Source: Paramoeba atlantica
Taxonomy: Eukaryota > Protista > Discosea
DNA length: 64,000 nucleotides
Assembly (NCBI GenBank): GCA_977017575.1
Contig: CDRNVI010000003.1
Span: forward strand, 310,001-374,000
Reading direction: 5' to 3'
Positions 6,863 to 32,212 of this stretch are shown one piece after another. The first letter of the stretch is position 1. Every line of letters starts with the position of its first letter. Below the pieces are notes generated by a model. That model saw only the letters and a list, made by a program, of their open reading frames with translations, did no database searches and was not told the origin of the DNA. The position numbers and the translations under genes were made by a program.

Positions 6863-9800
6863 CTATAAATCCGAGACACTATTACGAAGTAAATATGGTT
6901 TCCACCCGTCATTGTGATAACGCTCGATATGAGCGCCATCGCTTATTGTACATAAATCTCCGAAAATGCACTCCCTGCATGCTGACACCGTCTTCCGAGA
7001 TATTCTTTTTTCAGATGAAAATTCGTCGCGTGGCTGCGCTGCTGAAACGCTACTTCCAATTTGAGTCGTGTCACCACCTTGCGGTAAAATGGAATCTGTG
7101 CGAAGTTTCTTAATTTCATTGGCTTCTCTTATTGAAAGCGAAAGGCACGCTTGAGGTGGATTAGATTCGACGGTAGGAATGCTTTCACTCTGTGTAAAAT
7201 CTCGCTTCTCTTTATTTATGACGGACACAAACTCATGAAAACCAAATGAGGCCAAGGTCTCTTTCTTGATAGGCGACACCTTTTTCGGAGGCTTAATGGT
7301 GAGCCGACCCAATGCTTTGACGCTGCCATCGAATTCCACTCGATCATTAACATTGTTTTCCACAACCTCTTGGCTGCCTTTCTTCTCTAGTATTTTCTTT
7401 TTGAGAACAACTTTGGTTCTCTCATCTGTTGCTTTTTGCGTAGTTCTCCCCTCTGGTGTCACTGCTTCATTGTTTTGTAAGTTAACAGACAGAAACTTTT
7501 CAACAGCTCCTCGAACATCAAGATCTGCTTTGTAAGCCGTAGCGTCAAATTCTACTCGATCGTTAACACGGTTTTCCACAACCCCCTGACTTCCAGATTG
7601 AGGGCGCCCTAGTATTTTCAGTTTGGAAACAAATTCGGTTCCCGACTCAGTTAATTTTCGTGTAGTTTTCCCCTCTGGTGTCACTGCTTCATTGTTTTTT
7701 AAGTTAACAGAAAGAAGCTTTTCAACAGCTCCTCGAACATCAAGATCTGCTTTGTAAGTCGCAGTATCGAGTTCCACTCGATTCTTGACACGGTTTTCCG
7801 CAATCGCTCGACTTCCAGAAGGAGGGCGTTCTAGTATTTTCTTTTTAGAAACATTTTCAGCTCCTGAATCTGTTGACTTTTGTTTAATTTTCTCGTCTTG
7901 TGTCACAGCTTCAGTGTTTTGTAAGTTAACAGAAAGAAACTTTTCAACGGCTCCTCGAACATCAAAATCTGCTTTGTAAGTCGCATTATCACTTTTTATG
8001 ACTTTCGCACCTTTCTCATTCTGTTGGATATCGTTTTCAGTATCCATCCATAAGGTTTGTAGCTTTTCTTTGAGTTGTACAGTATCTTCCGGACTGCTTT
8101 TCGAAGTTCCATATCTGGTCACAACCAACAGCGCGCTCTGCCGCAATATTACCGCACGATTGCTCTCGAGCCTTCCCTCCGCTGAGACACAGCCTGGGTG
8201 TTCCTCATCCATCACGACCTCTGCATGCTTGTGATCCCCCAGAAGACGTACGATCAAACCCCGGGATCCGAAAGGGACACTGCCATCTGTATCACAATAC
8301 ACCACACGCTCCAGTACCCCTCGTACCCGATGTTGTACTGGAATGTCTCCAACACGTATACCAGCTGTGCTTTCCGTGCGGGGAATTAAAAGGCAGGAGA
8401 GTTTTACATGCTTTACGTTGATTCGACGCACGTTCGGGAGCTCACGGCACTTGAAGTTGAAAGAGATTACTGCCTTTTCCACAGCTGCCAACACTTTGGC
8501 CGTTAGCAACTCATCACATGCAGGAACAAAGGCCTCCTCTCTGTAGGGCAAGGTATGAAGGAAGGAAGTTATTTTACCAAGAGCCTCAAAAATGTCAGTT
8601 CCAGCCCATTCACCACGCATCATATGTGCCGGATCAAAAGCAAAAATGTCGAATCGGCCATTGCACAGTGTATCAATCAGCGGCTTAAATCGAGTCCAGT
8701 ATTCAAAGAGAATCCTTATCCCTGCTTCTGTAAAATACCATTCGCCTTTCGCGCTGCTGGAGTCCGTTGATTCCGACAACGAATTAAAATTCTTTTGAGC
8801 GCTATCAAGCAATGCCCCATCATCAGCACTGGAAGAAACATACTTCGTATAGCCCGCTCTTGCCATCTTTTGTTTCGTATTTAACATTCCCAACCCGATT
8901 TCCATTTCTCCATGAAATTTGTTACAACTAATATTACCCATGACGGCTAACACGACTCGAATCGGAGCATGAAGTTTTGTGGATACGAGGCTCACTGAAA
9001 ACCACTGAACGTTCGGTGTGTGTTGCTCAAGCGTAGGAGTAAGCAAAGAGGAAAATGACTCTGTACAACGTGACTCGTAATCGCGAAGAACAAGGTCATA
9101 CGTGACACCCGAATCCACATCATTGCACTGCACGACACTGCCAACACAACCAAAAAGACTTTGAATCCCCGTGCTTCCTGAATGAGGAACAAAAATAACT
9201 TCGGACAAAGTAGAGACAACCTTTCCAAGGACCTTGTTAGGAATATCGTATTTCGGATTCGGACGACAGGGATATTGTTCGGCGTTAAAAACGAGTTGCA
9301 CTGGATATTTCTCCGTGTTCTCCGAAAACTCATACTCAAAGGTACGATTCTTTGTGTATTTCACTCCAACAACATGGCGGACGTAGACAAGTACCCGGAT
9401 CGATGCCAAATCAATTCCTTTCTTTGATATAAGCTTCCGGTAAATGTCTTCGACCTGCTCCTCAAAAAGATCCATATCCTCTTCGCTGTGCTCAGATTCC
9501 TGAATGTGCTTCAAAATACAACGTGAATTTAGTGTACCTAGTACAGAAATTTCAACGTCACAGACAGAAGTCACACGTGCTCGTTTGAGGTAGGGGAAAC
9601 CCACAAACACATCATGTCCAACTAAGATTTTAGAAACTTCACGCGCGCTGGTTGAGGCTTCGTATGGCACATTCAAAAACAAAGAAGGCTGTCGTGTGAC
9701 GTGCAAGAATACCTTCACAGCACTACTCCGAAGCTCTGTTGAAACCGTTTTCACCAAAGGAGAGAGAGTACCGAACCCTTCTGATGGGGTATCGAATACT

Positions 9801-25830: not shown

Positions 25831-26445
25831 TATTCATAACTTATAAGTATTTATTGTCGGAGCTATGAAAGTTCTAATGCAAAATTACGGTAGATTAATT
25901 GTTGACAAAGTGATGTGGCCTCCGCTTATTTTTCACCACGACAATGAGCACCGCACTCGTTCGGGGCACAAGAATCAGCGTTGCGCTGCATGACTAAGCT
26001 TCTACCTTTCTCGGTGCGATTTCCGGCGTGGTACATTTATGACTTCCCTTTTATCAAACCCCTGTAACTCTTGAGTAGGGGGAACTATCATACTTTGGCG
26101 AGTACGGTGAGTACTTAAAAAGGATGGAACATGTACGTGATCTAGAGAAAACTCGCTGTACTCGGTTTAAGTATGAAGTATAGACTGTGCTTGCGGAAAC
26201 TTCTTTTCTATAATAGAAGATTCTTATAAATAGAAGATAAGAATGCAGCGCTCTCAGCAAAGCAAATGATATTATGATAGATGGAAAAAGAATCTAAGAA
26301 TTTTCCGATAGCAACACAAAAAGAAACGAATCAAAATTATTTAAGGTACAACTTTTCAGTTCCTGTTATCGAGCGGGTAAACGTGGGTAAGGCGGGTAAA
26401 CGGGTAATTTACCCGGGTAAATACCCATTTATTCACTGGTCGAGG

Positions 26446-26525
26446 GCCGCTCCGTAACTCCGCATTACCCAGTCCCAAGCCTGGGGAAGGTCTTCGCTAA
26501 GGCCGGGGGAGGAGGGAGGAGAGGC
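26446..26525 (+). ncRNA. Twister self-cleaving ribozyme (type P1, with P5 hairpin); predicted cut between U26455 and A26456
   Basis: P1 GCC.CTCC/GGAG.GGC; UAA; P2 CTCC/GGAG; T2 GC/GC; P4 CCCAG/CTGGG closing loop TCCCAAGC; P5 GGTCTT-cgct-AAGGCC; conserved GA followed by GGG (T1 with CCC). Confidence 0.85.
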
Positions 26526-26625
26526 GTTAAGGATTTTTACTTCGAATTGGCAGACATACAGTGTAGTTCATCAACATGTGGCTGATTGGCGTCGCTCATG
26601 TTTATGTTCCGACCTGAGAAATATT

Positions 26626-27660
26626 GGATCTGTGGTACGTTAATTGGCTCTGTGTGGCCCGTTTGTTGGATCTGTGCGATCCGGTTGTTGGATCTGTGTG
26701 GTGCGTTGATTGGATCTGCGTGATTCGTTGATTGGATCTATGTGGTCCGTTGATTGGATCTGCGTGGTCCGTTTATTGGATCTGTGAGGTTGGTTGTTGG
26801 ATCTGTGTGGTCCGTTGATTGGATCTGTGTGGTCCGTTTGTTGTATCTGTGTGGTCCGTTTGTTGGATCTGTGTGGTCCGTTGATTGGATCTGTGTGATA
26901 CGTTGATTGGATCTGTGTGGTCCGTTGATTGGGTCTGTGCGGTCCGTTTGCTGGATCTGTGTGATCCGTTTGTTGGATCTGTGTGGTCCGTTGATTGGAT
27001 CTATGTGGTCCGTTTGTTGGATCTGTGCGGTCCGTTGATTGGATCTATGTGGTCCGTTGATTGGATCTGTGTGATTCGTTTGTTGGATCTGTATTGTCCG
27101 TTTATTGGATCTGTGCGGTTGGTTGTTGGATCTGTGTGGTCCGTTGATTGGATCTATGTGGTCCGTTTGTTGGATCTGTGTGGTCCGTTTATTGGATCTG
27201 TGCGGTCCGTTGATTGGATCTATGTGGTCCGTTGATTGGATCTGTGTGGTCCGTTGATTGGATCTGTGTGGTCCGTTGATTGGATCTACATGTTGTATGT
27301 GGTCCGTTTGTTGGATCTGTGTGGTCCGTTTGTTGGATCTTCGTGGTCCGTTGATTGGATCTATGTGGTCCGTTAATTGGATCTGTGTGGTCCGTTAGTT
27401 GGATCTGTATTGTCAGTTTATTGGATCTGTTCGGTTGGTTGTTGGATTTGGGTGGTCCGTTGATTGGATCTGCGTGATACGTTTATTGGATCTGTGTGGT
27501 CCGTTGATTAGACCGGTGTGGTCGTTGATTGGATCTGTGTGGTCCGTTTGTTGGATCTGTGTGGTCCGTTTATGGGGTCTATGTGATCCGTTTGTTGGAT
27601 CTGTGTAGTGGCTCATTGCAGGAGAGTGTCCGATGTGGGATCTGTGGGGTCCGTTGGATC
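26626..27660 (+). repeat. Tandem array of about 45-47 degenerate 22-nt units (consensus GATTGGATCTGTGTGGTCCGTT)
   Basis: GGATCT-like cores counted by eye; shorter GGTTGGTT variant units near 26780, 27110, 27425. Confidence 0.95.
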
Positions 27661-27699
27661 AGTGCGGACTGCAGGCTCGATCTGTATCCCCATGCTTGT

Positions 27700-27871
27700 A
27701 TGCGGAGTTACGGAGCGGCCCTCGACCAGTGAATAAATCGGTGTTTGACGGATCGGCCGTTAAACGGAGGTTTGTTGATGGTCGACGGCCGTGTAGTACG
27801 AGCGTTTGGGGTTGGTTAGGAGGTAGGCCTAGGTGGCAGCTGGGCCCAGCACTCCCCGTTCCGGCTAAAAA
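27700..27871 (+). other. Internal complementary region (ICR) of the YR retroelement
   Basis: 27700-27738 is the exact reverse complement of 26427-26465 (39/39); 27734-27871 is the reverse complement of 31802-31940 (3 substitutions, 1 indel); the two halves share TAAAT. Confidence 0.9.
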
Positions 27872-28153
27872 TATATATATATACATGTATATATATACAT
27901 GTTGTATATAGGAAGGAATTAAGTACACTATTGAGGAGGAAAGTTATCAAAATAGTACTAGTAGCAAGAGTTGGAATGCCGTGCTTCCATCTATTTAACG
28001 TAGCAAGATCTCACACGCGCTCCTACGTGATATTTGACCTAAGTTTGTTGGGACTGTTTTTAGAGATTCTCCACCTAAAGGATAGATCTAGAAATTCTGT
28101 ATCACTGTTTAGTTTTATAGCGAACTACACTCTGTATAAAATTTGTTTATTTC

Positions 28154-29119
28154 GTGCTTATGAGCTCTAAGCGAAAGCGTACTCCCGTGGAAGAACCTAG
28201 GACTACATTAGAAGGTTCTGATTCGAATGTGGTAAACACAGTTTTTCGAGAGATATCAAAAGCGATCTCCCATTCTTCTGACACGAGTCGTTGCACGCAT
28301 AAGAATGATTTATGTGGCGCGATAGTGTCTGAGGTGCATGAATGGGTTGGAACCGCGGCCATTCCAAAGGCCGAAGTTTCAGATGTATTCCGCGTGAAGC
28401 TAGAAGAAGTATTTATCAAGTGTCGTCAGGGTACCTGCGACAAGGACAATAAGGAAGCCCTGGAAAGCAGAATTAGTTTCATAAAGGGCGACGAGTATTA
28501 CATGTCAATTGTTGAGGATTTTGTCGCAGACAAAGCAGGTATGAGATTCTGGCCCTCTATGCATGCGACGGACAAAGCTAAACTTTATTCCGTCCTTGTG
28601 GAACTTGCCGTTGTTCTACAGCTGCATGCTTTACCGAAAGGGCTAAGCTTTCAATGCCCTGATGCGATGTATTACGCCACCGTAATTTCTTCGGCAGCCC
28701 GAGCGGCGTATGTGGGAAAAGAAAATTTTAAGAAAAGTACACCTTCCCCTTTAGGTGAGCGGATTCTTGCGAAAAAAGTATACGAAAAAATGGACTCAGT
28801 GGAAGAAATGTCTGCTTTCGTGAACACATTAACTGCATGCACGTATAATGTTACAAAAAGTTCTTCTAATCATTTTCGACCTCTTGGTCAGTCCTTCCGC
28901 TCTTCCCGACATTCATTTTACGGTGCAGTGTCGCCGCCAAGCTGTTCGGGATGTGGGGGTAATGGACACCAAGCTAGAGAAGGGGGAGCGTGTCCAGCTT
29001 GGCGTCCACATCTCGCAAAGTGGAAGTCTCGCTCTTGCGGTGGAAATGGGCACAAAAATATGTGGTGCCCATCGGCGAGCAGCCGTGCGACTGAGGAACC
29101 AAACAAATCACTCAACTGA
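28154..29119 (+). CDS. Gag-like protein of the YR retroelement
   Basis: 321 aa; C-terminal knuckles CSGCGGNGHQAREGGAC (CX2CX4HX7C) and degenerate SCGGNGHKNMWC. Confidence 0.7.
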   Translation: MLMSSKRKRTPVEEPRTTLEGSDSNVVNTVFREISKAISHSSDTSRCTHKNDLCGAIVSEVHEWVGTAAIPKAEVSDVFRVKLEEVFIKCRQGTCDKDNKEALESRISFIKGDEYYMSIVEDFVADKAGMRFWPSMHATDKAKLYSVLVELAVVLQLHALPKGLSFQCPDAMYYATVISSAARAAYVGKENFKKSTPSPLGERILAKKVYEKMDSVEEMSAFVNTLTACTYNVTKSSSNHFRPLGQSFRSSRHSFYGAVSPPSCSGCGGNGHQAREGGACPAWRPHLAKWKSRSCGGNGHKNMWCPSASSRATEEPNKSLN

Positions 29120-29734
29120 AAAGTACGCGCCATAAACCGTACTGAAGTGTGGAACAGGATAACGTAGTGTAGACGAAGATATCTTTTAAGACATTAACTT
29201 ACTCTGTGATGGAAGTAGCACTTTTTGCTTTCTGATACATGGGAAGGCTGTATGGAGGCGCGTAAAGGCTGTGTATGTATCTAAAACATAAATATTTTAT
29301 CTAAACGTACGTGTATGTTGTTGATTGCAACTTAGAGACAAACATTAACTAAAGATTTATTTTCTGGAATGGAAGGCTTATTAAAGCTAAGGGCGTACTT
29401 TGACATTTATAGTAATGCTCAAATGGTATCTAACTCCTTATACAGTATGATGTCATTTTATTTGTACAGTAAATAGACATTGAATGCACATTCAATGTAG
29501 TAAATAAGTATTTTACGTGGTGGACAATGTTTTGTATATTTTGTTTTCTGCTGTCTTTGGTATTTTCAATGCAGCAGTCCGTATAATAATTGAACTACCC
29601 TTAGCCTATAATTGAGCTACCGTTAGTATGATAAGTCGGAAGGACATATGGGGGTACGCAATACTCAAGGGTACGTAGTTTGAGTTGGCAGTGCGCGGTG
29701 TACCAGCGTATTGTTTAGATTTTTTTAGTCTGTT

Positions 29735-30741
29735 TTGGTTATCCTGACACGTACAGTATATTTGGTTATTAGTCAACTCAAGATAAACTTTATGTACCGA
29801 AAAAACAAGAGTCGAACAGGTTTTAAGTCGACTAATATAGTTCGGGTGACAAGTACTGAAGCGTACAGTGAATTAGTGGAAAGTTCGGTGCGATGCTCTA
29901 CATCCAGGAAATATCATTCGTGCGCAAATACATTGAGAATTTTTTTGCGCACATACCGTAACCTTCCGGATACCGCACCAGTCGATATTACAAGCTTCGA
30001 AGAAAGTGAGTTTGTAGCATTTCTAGTAAATTGGAAGCGACAAGGTTTGGCTTCGCCACGCTTGTATCATGCCGCCTTGGCTCACTTCAAGCTTCAAGCG
30101 GCTAAGCGCGAAGCTTGGCTACACACACGAGAAATTCAAAAGTTAATTAAGGGAGCCGGTGTGAATGGCGAAAGAAATGAAAAAGGCGTTCTTACATGTG
30201 AAATGCTTCGTGAATTATGTAACTATATTGAAAATAGAGTTGTTCTCCCCACAACGTGTATGAGTTGTAACAAAAAAGGGATTTGTCAGAAACAGGGTCT
30301 GCGGGATATTCTTACAACAGCAATAATGCTTTTCATTGATTGCCCTATTCGGCCTGAGAATTTGCAAAATATAAAGTGGGATCATATCCAGCTATCAGAT
30401 TCAGAACTTTACTTGCCACGCACAAAAACAAAGAACGGTGGTAGCACAATTAAGTGTGGGAGAATTGTGCTTGATCGGATGAAAAATTTGCCAAAATATG
30501 ACGAGTGTTTTGTTTTAGTAACCCGAAGTGTACACGGATGCACTTGTCCAAGGTGTTAGCAGGGGCGAAAAAGCATTTTAGCTGGCCTGAATCACTTACG
30601 GTTTCTGTACATTGCTTGCGCCACACTGGGCATAGCGCTCGAAAAAATCAGGTAAGTGATCTGATAGGAGCGTTTGTGTCTGATACTACGGTTTCGACTT
30701 TTCGGCATTATACGCGCTCTAATGCCGCCAGATTAAACTGA
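29735..30741 (+). pseudogene. Tyrosine recombinase, frameshifted near 30505-30550
   Basis: First frame has an SAM-like N-domain, PIRPENL (Arg) and PRTKTK (Lys); second frame (30505-30741) has HCLRHTG and FRHYTR (Tyr). Confidence 0.85.
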
Positions 30742-31061
30742 ACGAAAATGTAAGCTTGTAGCAGAATTTGACACACAGTATAGGAGATACATACATGTAC
30801 TATGTATGTTACTGTACTATACGTGCTATGTATGGTACACTTGTATTCGGTTTAGTGCGGCTCTGATACAACTGATAAGTATAAGAGTATTCGGAAAGTA
30901 CGTGTACAAGGATAGAACCTTCACCATGCGACTCAGTCTCGCATGAAAAGCGACACAACTGTACTTTGACATTAGTTTAGGCACTACTTTTTTAACACAA
31001 TATACAGAACCAGACTTCGCGCAGTTCCTACAACACTGCTGATTTAAACGGATGGATACTC

Positions 31062-31748
31062 ATGCTACGTAGTGCAGGTATCTATTTTAGTTCTTTACCA
31101 ACGGGGAACGGAATAAATTTGGGTGACTACGATCAAACGGCTCGAAAAGGTCAGTGGGCAATCCCGACGGACCCTCTTGAAGAATTGGTTAATGTGGGGG
31201 GCGCTAGATTGATTCTTGGTGAAACATTGGCAAATGTCCCCTTTGTAAAGAAGGCATTACATCTAATTTCTACAGCCGCTGTCCAAGGCTTAACAATGGA
31301 AGGTCAAAATCCAAGCGAGTGGAATACGGATCGCTGGAGCCGCCATATTCTTTATTTAATAAAGGTCGGGGTTTTGGAGAAATGTTGCACAGACTCAGCT
31401 TTAAGCCTTGATAAGAGTCCTATCTATGGTCGATACGCCGCCGTATTGAAAGATGAAAATAAGGCTCGGGCAATTTTTGACCTCAGATTTTTGAACAAAC
31501 ACTGCCCGGGAACGGGGATACAGTTTTCTTTAGTAAGTGCAGGAACACTGATCTCTCTTCTTCGAGAGCTCTTAGTCACAAAGTTGAGGTTGCGAATAGT
31601 ACACTGCGATATTAAGAACGCATACTACCAGTTCGCGATCGAAAATGATCTAAGACAGCAATGCTGTGTATACATGCATGATATATTTTCTTTCAGCCCT
31701 GTATACTGTTTCTTTTGCGGGATATTGTCAAGGGCCTTGACTCTGTGA
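31062..31748 (+). pseudogene. Reverse transcriptase, N-terminal half only
   Basis: KARAIFDLRFLN and IVHCDIKNAYYQ motifs; no YxDD or RNase H seen in any frame before the right terminus. Confidence 0.8.
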
Positions 31749-31801
31749 GAAGGAACACGTGTCCCCCCAATCGGATAAAGGAATCCTGCCTTATCTCTCC
31801 G

Positions 31802-31940
31802 TTTTTAGCCGGAACGGGGAGTGCTGGGCCCAGCTGCCACCTAGGCCTACCTCCCAACCAACCCCAAACGCTCGTACTACACGGCCCTCGACCAGTCAAC
31901 AAACCTCCGTTTAACGGCCGAGCCGTCAAACACCGATTTA
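31802..31940 (+). repeat. Right terminal sequence of the YR element, inverted relative to the ICR
   Basis: 139 bp, reverse complement of 27734-27871; ends in ATTTA. Confidence 0.9.
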
Positions 31941-32212
31941 CCCGGCAGGGGTATGTATAGTACGCACCAGAAAAAAAATGCTACATGTAAAGAAAAAAAC
32001 CGCCACATGAATGAGGAGAGAAAAATTGTTTTATAGATTATTTTTCCCGATACGATTTCCACGTTCGTCGGACCAGTTCGTACTTACACACTGTATATTT
32101 GAGATCGACAGCCCATAGGCACTTCAAAAGCTAAGTTTCCAGAATCCCATGGTGACAACTTTTCCTCAGTCATAAAGATAGTACAACCACCATAATTGTT
32201 TTTCACGTAGCT

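Follow-up and report, generated by a model that had tools for sequence, protein, structure and literature searches.

The analyzed window, a stretch of 64 kb, comprises one long unidirectional cluster of host genes and a retroelement that forms its only plus-strand coding stretch. Of the 28 ORFs of at least 220 aa listed for the window, 22 are host ORFs located outside the element, every one of them on the minus strand; the six on the plus strand consist of the element's three (28154-29119, 29735-30559 and 31062-31748) and three others positioned inside longer minus-strand ORFs. The retroelement copy, which is defective and 5,509 nt long, occupies positions 26432-31940 on the plus strand. An empty-site paralogue at G000:C30 follows the window sequence to 26414 and resumes it at 31932, and in three copies of the window subfamily the shared sequence begins at (A/G)TTTA-TTCACTGG, the DNA upstream of this point being unrelated. 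The left junction reads ...ACCCATTTA followed by TTCACTGG, the right junction ...ACCGATTTA followed by CCCGGCAGG, and the empty target ...ACCCATTTA followed directly by CCCGGCAGG. Common to both junctions and to the empty target is the core ATTTA, found at 26427-26431 on the left and at 31936-31940 at the right end. The junctions and the empty site together therefore delimit the element as 26432-31940, with ATTTA at both junctions, where it would be the expected remnant of a recombinase crossover within a short shared core. The insertion site belongs to a multicopy host repeat of ~235 nt (window 26226-26431 and 31941-31969), of which ~206 nt precede and ~29 nt follow the element; this repeat recurs at 84-94% identity on at least ten contigs, and the target at the insertion point forms a small palindrome, GGGTAAAT-ACCC-ATTTACCC. 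The repeat is not an obligatory target, because other copies of the subfamily sit in unrelated DNA.

All three genes of the element are encoded on the plus strand. The first, ORF1 (28121-29116), codes for a Gag-like protein with CCHC-type knuckles and is related at E 3e-12 to ORF1 of another family, which has a sub-threshold zf-CCHC match of its own (E 0.001; 19.5 bits, the cut-off being 20.8). The second, a tyrosine-recombinase (YR) gene at 29729-30738, is split by a frameshift, such that frame 0 runs to 30556 and the catalytic part, HxLRH...Y, is carried in a different frame at 30502-30738. The third, a reverse transcriptase (RT) gene at 30996-31745, is truncated and covers the first ~216 residues of an RT/RNase H ORF of 590-621 aa, to which it is 45% identical. 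Pfam searches with the element's single ORFs were almost blank, and an AlphaFold model of the RT ORF was unusable (mean pLDDT 39.6). The family profile of the recombinase matched XerA (5hxy) at E 3e-4 over the catalytic domain, Pfam Phage_integrase was matched by six of seven recombinase relatives, and residues R179, H265, R268 and Y298, corresponding to the R, HxxR and Y pattern, are invariant in the family. An exhaustive profile search for the RT returned 1,088 relatives, half of the distant ones tested matching RVT_1 near 1e-5, and the widened family profile aligned with solved reverse transcriptases (8r0s, Ty3 and HIV RT) at E values of 1e-17 to 1e-11; the invariant residues D452, E500, D524 and D573 of the RT ORF family are compatible with the RNase H pattern. 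The presence of RT/RNase H, recombinase and Gag-like genes therefore identifies the element as a tyrosine-recombinase retrotransposon whose genes are arranged in the order Gag-like, YR, RT/RH. Judged from its sequence, the window copy is a defective relic in which the recombinase is frameshifted and most of the RT is deleted, and the conserved nucleotides of a ribozyme near its left end are intact.

This ribozyme motif, at 26446-26525 on the plus strand, is a twister of type P1 that lacks P3 and has P5; its limits rest on direct reading of the sequence, with the Rfam alignment spanning 26451-26520 and model R1 spanning 26447-26524. The initial annotation had described a complete twister at the left end of a tyrosine-recombinase retroelement, and both its structural reading and its placement agree with what we found: every twister element lies at the positions it gave, and the motif begins 15 nt in from the element's left end. 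In P1 (26446-26454 with 26517-26525), two G.A mismatches (26449.26522 and 26454.26517) accompany seven Watson-Crick pairs. The scissile bond is predicted, from the alignment to the Rfam model, to lie between U26455 and A26456 within UAA, so that the 3' product would begin at A26456; this cut falls 24 nt inside the element, or 29 nt if ATTTA is counted. There follow P2 (CUCC/GGAG, 26458-26461 with 26508-26511), the P4 hairpin at 26468-26485 (CCCAG/CUGGG, 26468-26472 with 26481-26485, closed by loop UCCCAAGC), and the optional P5 hairpin (GGUCUU-CGCU-AAGGCC, 26489-26494 with 26499-26504, including one G.U pair). Pseudoknot T2 joins G26462-C26463 to G26479-C26480 in loop L4, and pseudoknot T1 joins CCC at 26474-26476 in the P4 loop to GGG at 26514-26516, the latter forming the 3' half of T1 within GAGGG of internal loop L1 (26512-26516).

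By definition, twisters require P1, P2, P4, T1 and T2 and a U-A cut site, with P0, P3 and P5 being optional (PMC5408937). The window motif shares with type P1 (Rfam RF03160; PMC5408937) the stems P1, P2 and P4, the L4 loop sequence, GAGGG in L1, both pseudoknots and the U-A cut site with its conserved A, and its lack of P3 and possession of P5 fall within the described range of optional stems (PMC5408937). The G.A mismatches in P1 are not disqualifying, since P1 is dispensable for cleavage in the twisters studied (PMC5408937). It differs from the curated type in its score and in the P4-P2 junction (GAA and GGG around P5), which departs from the Rfam consensus UAAA and varies among families, as well as in its host, a kinetoplastid-like protist, a group with no twister report in the literature searched. 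With all conserved nucleotides kept, the segment 26446-26525 is, on sequence criteria, a real twister motif, and the covariance-model search located no other twister site within the 64-kb window.

How well the motif scores depends on the threshold applied. In a permissive scan, Rfam twister-P1 (RF03160) aligned over its full length (1-68) to 26451-26520 with 37.5 bits and with all of its highly conserved positions matched, corresponding to E values of 6.3e-7 in a search of 271 nt, 1.5e-5 in 6.4 kb and 2.6e-5 in the whole 45.7-Mb genome. A default Rfam scan of the window at the gathering score of 67.2 listed nothing; this cut-off is an annotation threshold rather than a structural feature, and the motif scores below it because it lacks the P3 stem and carries an inserted P5 of 18 nt. 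The initial annotation had named the Rfam model as a check on its reading, and this check is borne out by the full-length alignment and the genome-wide E value, but not at the level of the gathering cut-off. The sub-threshold score raises the alternative that a G-rich stretch resembles the twister consensus by chance. Also in keeping with a chance resemblance, weak twister-P1 matches at E<=10 occur in 10 of 14 control genomes, and the minimum-energy fold of the motif region is no more stable than that of shuffled sequence (z 0.05). Set against it are the genome-wide E value and the evidence from related copies, described below, namely their number, their compensatory changes and their fixed position relative to the element genes.

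The genome searched comprises 45.7 Mb in 248 contigs, across which Rfam twister-P1 had 56 matches at E<=10. A covariance model built from 13 copies recovered at least 51 sites at E<=0.01, and a model built from 42 copies recovered at least 138; both counts are lower bounds, as 150 of ~8,500-9,400 candidates were scored per search. The copies sort into at least six sequence families. Covariation was counted on 41 distinct genomic copies in a model-based alignment, into which T1 and T2, absent from the model, were written; a MAFFT alignment of all copies was rejected, its 3' halves being misaligned. Standard pairs form in 88.5% of cells in the 41 copies, compared with 37-51% when the partners are slid by 1-3 columns, and cells changed on both sides number 208, compared with 71 in shuffles, none of 500 shuffles reaching the observed value. 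In these copies, all six counted pairs of P1 covary, as do two of the five pairs of P4 and all six of P5, the latter stem ranging from 16 to ~60 nt in length across families; all four pairs of P2 are changed on both sides, yielding the forms CUCC/GGAG, ACAC/GUGU and CCCU/AGGx. Because the copies were aligned by fitting to the nested helices, the count favours these, but T1 is independent of the fit. At the inner T1 pair (columns 36-146), 28 copies have C-G and nine have A-U, which amounts to a change from CCC/GGG to CCA/UGG, with the L4 loop UCCAAAGC accompanying GAUGG in L1. Both T2 pairs are invariant in all 41 copies and are neutral for the covariation case, and alignment A1, which holds 26 copies, shows no variation in the AA of UAA. 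One sister ribozyme, on the minus strand of G000:C37 (3326-3403; L008:1497-1574), is identical to the window motif apart from a C-to-G substitution in its T1 loop (UCGCAAGC) and could serve as a naturally occurring inactive control.

The twister also occupies a fixed position in the element family. A same-strand twister lies 3.5-6.5 kb upstream of 13 of the 14 full-length RT-like loci, defined as matches extending from profile position <=31 to >=587, for which the chance expectation is ~0.01 per locus (138 sites x 7 kb / (2 x 45.7 Mb)). Recombinase homologues with 28-35% identity are likewise found 3-5 kb downstream of twisters, on the same strand, in five families, and the same twister-element layout is seen in a second, independently produced assembly from ENA (protein identity 97%). 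Compensatory changes in every helix and in T1, the twisters upstream of RT loci and the presence of at least 138 related sites contradict a chance match, which we accordingly reject as extremely improbable.

For relatives elsewhere, nine metagenome or read-assembly contigs with related RTs were searched, most of them lacking a 5' leader, and a candidate twister was seen in one only. This contig (L077; ENA ERZ27280294) has a weak twister-like match at 52-127 (20.3 bits, E 0.003 on a rough calibration), located on the right strand 560 nt upstream of ORF1, and encodes related Gag-like, YR and RT ORFs, the RT being 33% identical. In this candidate, L4 is a 10-nt loop, the loop reading is UGCAAGC, L1 is GAGCA, and T1 would become UGC/GCA. 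Rfam found nothing on this contig or on L071 and L073-L076, and L078-L081 were searched with the genome-derived covariance model alone. The candidate hints at a divergent relative, in which case the pairing of twister and element may extend beyond the source organism.

Between the ribozyme and ORF1, the leader of the window element carries two further features. At 26587-27660, 1.1 kb is taken up by an array in which a 22-nt unit (TTGGATCTGTGTGGTCCGTTGA-like) recurs ~45 times, and this is followed at 27700-27871 by an internal complementary region (ICR), the reverse complement of both element ends. ICR positions 27700-27746 are the reverse complement of 26419-26465, hence spanning the predicted cut, with a 100% match over 26427-26465, and positions 27734-27871 are the reverse complement of the right end, 31802-31940. 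The ICR thus holds the complement of the 29 letters that the cut would remove together with that of the first ten letters of the cleaved RNA, and runs straight into the right-end complement. In three families, the ICR extends across the predicted cut, covering 27-29 nt on its upstream side and 6-13 nt on its downstream side. No split direct repeats were seen among the element's repeats, and no second ribozyme was found at its 3' end. A 22-nt inverted match between 26428-26449, which includes the 5' strand of P1, and 31882-31903, 40 nt inside the right end, is the element's only feature resembling an inverted terminal repeat (ITR), long inverted terminal repeats of the DIRS1 type being absent.

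This architecture can be compared with those of two groups of known elements. With DIRS-1 and the DIRS order (PMC7192593; PMC6681497), the window element shares Gag-like, tyrosine-recombinase and RT/RNase H genes and an ICR matching both ends; it differs in that its inverted terminal repeat is only ~22 nt and that the ICR is placed ahead of ORF1, within the leader, and in the ribozyme, which is not described for DIRS elements in the literature searched. With VIPER and TATE (PMC6681497), it shares the kinetoplastid host group and the gene order Gag-like, YR, RT/RH; in a comparison by description only, those elements differ in having split direct repeats, no ICR and no mention of a ribozyme, a word with zero occurrences in the VIPER/TATE paper (PMC6681497).

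We propose, with a probability of roughly two in three, that a type-P1 twister is a built-in 5' module of DIRS/VIPER-type YR retrotransposons in a kinetoplastid-like host, that it serves to free the element RNA, and that the ICR templates the repair of the end lost in the process. We infer the cleavage, transcription and repair steps of this mechanism from sequence. Because only 24-29 nt precede the cut, leaving no room for a promoter upstream, the element would be transcribed from outside. The ribozyme would fold during transcription and cleave the U26455-A26456 bond, giving an element RNA with a defined 5'-OH end and free of upstream RNA, by analogy with R2 and Perere-3 (PMC8501958). The cut would come at a cost, in that the 24-29 letters at the head of the element would go with the upstream piece, and these letters might be rebuilt from the ICR in reverse transcription: minus-strand cDNA ending at the complement of A26456 would pair with a same-strand copy of the ICR and be extended across the joined ends, and the recombinase would insert the completed joined-end DNA at an ATTTA-containing site. 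A joined-end role for ICRs has been proposed in DIRS elements (PMC6681497; PMC7192593). A counterpoint is that slow folding could allow the 47-nt ICR complement to trap the 5' half of the ribozyme in a duplex; the ICR could compete with ribozyme folding unless the cut precedes transcription of the ICR, 1.2 kb downstream, and the 22-nt array might be a spacer that delays transcription of the ICR until the ribozyme has cut. In the broader formulation, a superfamily of YR retrotransposons would set the 5' end of its genomic RNA by a canonical twister and have an ICR tuned to rebuild the 24-29 removed letters, a generalization for which we regard the odds as about even.

The orientation of the window copy bears on what this ribozyme could do at its present locus. 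The initial annotation had envisaged excision of the element RNA from a polycistronic transcript, a role that does not fit the window copy: the element is on the plus strand and the surrounding cluster on the minus strand, and with all host ORFs outside the element on the minus strand, host read-through would yield the antisense strand and not the ribozyme. No promoter was found for the window copy. The motif may therefore be a true twister by descent that is silent at this locus, a reading with which the opposite orientation of the host ORFs, the frameshift in the recombinase and the reduction of the RT to its first ~216 residues all agree. In agreement with it, too, a search of RNA runs did not detect the locus, the one possible RNA run yielding nothing. 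Sister copies are decaying as well, one through the C-to-G change in the T1 loop noted above (L008) and another, on C35, through a deletion that begins within the ribozyme, removing its 3' half, and also takes away the array and the ICR. A silent relic nonetheless seems to us unlikely, as the window ribozyme retains all conserved nucleotides and pairings, and defective DIRS-type copies with intact ends and an ICR, as here, can be transcribed and mobilised in trans; moreover, such a reading bears on the window copy and not on the family.

The C35 copy (L067; G000:C35:53681-57518, minus strand) is 98% identical to the window element and joins window position 26485 straight to 27890, and its RT gene is retained further than that of the window copy. 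Ends of DNA-assembly contigs at 26456 and at 26484/26485 were considered as RNA ends and rejected: they are assembly branch points, at which families share a conserved core or the C35 deletion joins.

Elsewhere in the genome, twister sites form dense same-strand clusters, as at G000:C54:594179-701291 and G000:C99:43396-78466, and at G000:C54 three of them (646347, 652878 and 659406) follow one another at a regular spacing of 6.53 kb. Such regular same-strand clusters suggest tandem arrays of elements. RT fragments on C87 recur every 2,922 nt.

Arrays of this kind would accommodate a different function, in which the main task of the ribozyme would be to cut unit-length RNA out of tandem or circular templates, at both ends of the unit and in a rolling-circle-like manner, rather than to release the element from host transcripts; a unit cut at two successive twisters would hold every letter of the element, in permuted form. 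The window copy and several others are, however, solitary, with host or repeat DNA on both sides, and no second ribozyme was found at the 3' end. Furthermore, an ICR conserved across the cut would be needless if permuted unit-length RNA were the rule. We therefore hold unit-length trimming to be a distinctly improbable main function, and return to release of the element RNA with ICR-templated repair as the preferred reading in comparing the window element with other ribozyme-headed retroelements.

The components of the proposed system are individually known, namely the twister type, twister variants heading one non-LTR element (PMC8501958), the ICRs of DIRS elements and the YR elements VIPER and TATE. 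What is new is the combination of a twister with a YR element, a cut placed inside the element, and an ICR that matches it; in line with the initial annotation, which knew of no such case, the literature searched contained no report of a twister in kinetoplastids or in YR retrotransposons. Self-cleaving RNAs of another class are familiar at retroelement 5' ends, as with the HDV-like ribozyme of L1Tc, an element of Trypanosoma cruzi. The ribozymes that head R2 elements, also HDV-like, are among the precedents cited in PMC8501958. As proposed for the window element, the ribozymes of R2 and L1Tc define the 5' end of a read-through retroelement RNA; they differ in ribozyme class and in heading non-LTR elements, and they cut at or upstream of the first base, which leaves nothing to rebuild. 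The nearest precedent within the twister class is Perere-3 of Schistosoma mansoni, a non-LTR retrotransposon whose 5' end is processed by twister variants (PMC8501958). Both systems have a twister-type ribozyme at the retrotransposon 5' end and a proposed role in processing co-transcripts, but Perere-3 moves by target-primed reverse transcription, and its target-site duplication provides the 5' strand of P1 (PMC8501958). In the window, by contrast, a YR element encloses the whole ribozyme, P1 included, with the predicted cut 24-29 nt in from the element's left end, and the ICR keeps the letters that would be lost.

Twisters are among the most widespread self-cleaving RNAs, and yet their only demonstrated natural job is in one flatworm non-LTR element (PMC8501958). 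In the genome analyzed here, many diverged families belonging to another class of retroelement consistently carry canonical twisters, with clean covariation, at their head, and the ICR seems to compensate for the cut. If the proposal is correct, the twister would gain a natural role in a second, unrelated retroelement class, and the replication of promoter-less elements in genomes transcribed as long units would be explained. Both the purpose of the twister in eukaryotes and the regeneration of ends by DIRS-type elements are thereby made testable by simple assays, and the covariance model offers a ready marker for the 5' ends of twister-headed elements in protist genomes.

Host features other than the element relate to the nature of the source organism. 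A spliced-leader-like sequence ending CAGTTTCTGTACTTTGTTG is present in ten copies on different contigs of the genome, compared with none in the control. These matches resemble retro-copied trans-spliced mRNAs; a reading as spliced-leader (SL) RNA genes was rejected, and Rfam gave no hit. Taken together with the 64-kb one-strand gene cluster, the SL-like copies fit a kinetoplastid-like protist. At one site (L031:1478-1560; G000:C3:645487-645569), a poly(A) run, a 39-nt spliced-leader-like sequence with the same ending, a 5' UTR and an ORF starting with ATG follow one another, and this arrangement looks like a retro-copied trans-spliced mRNA.
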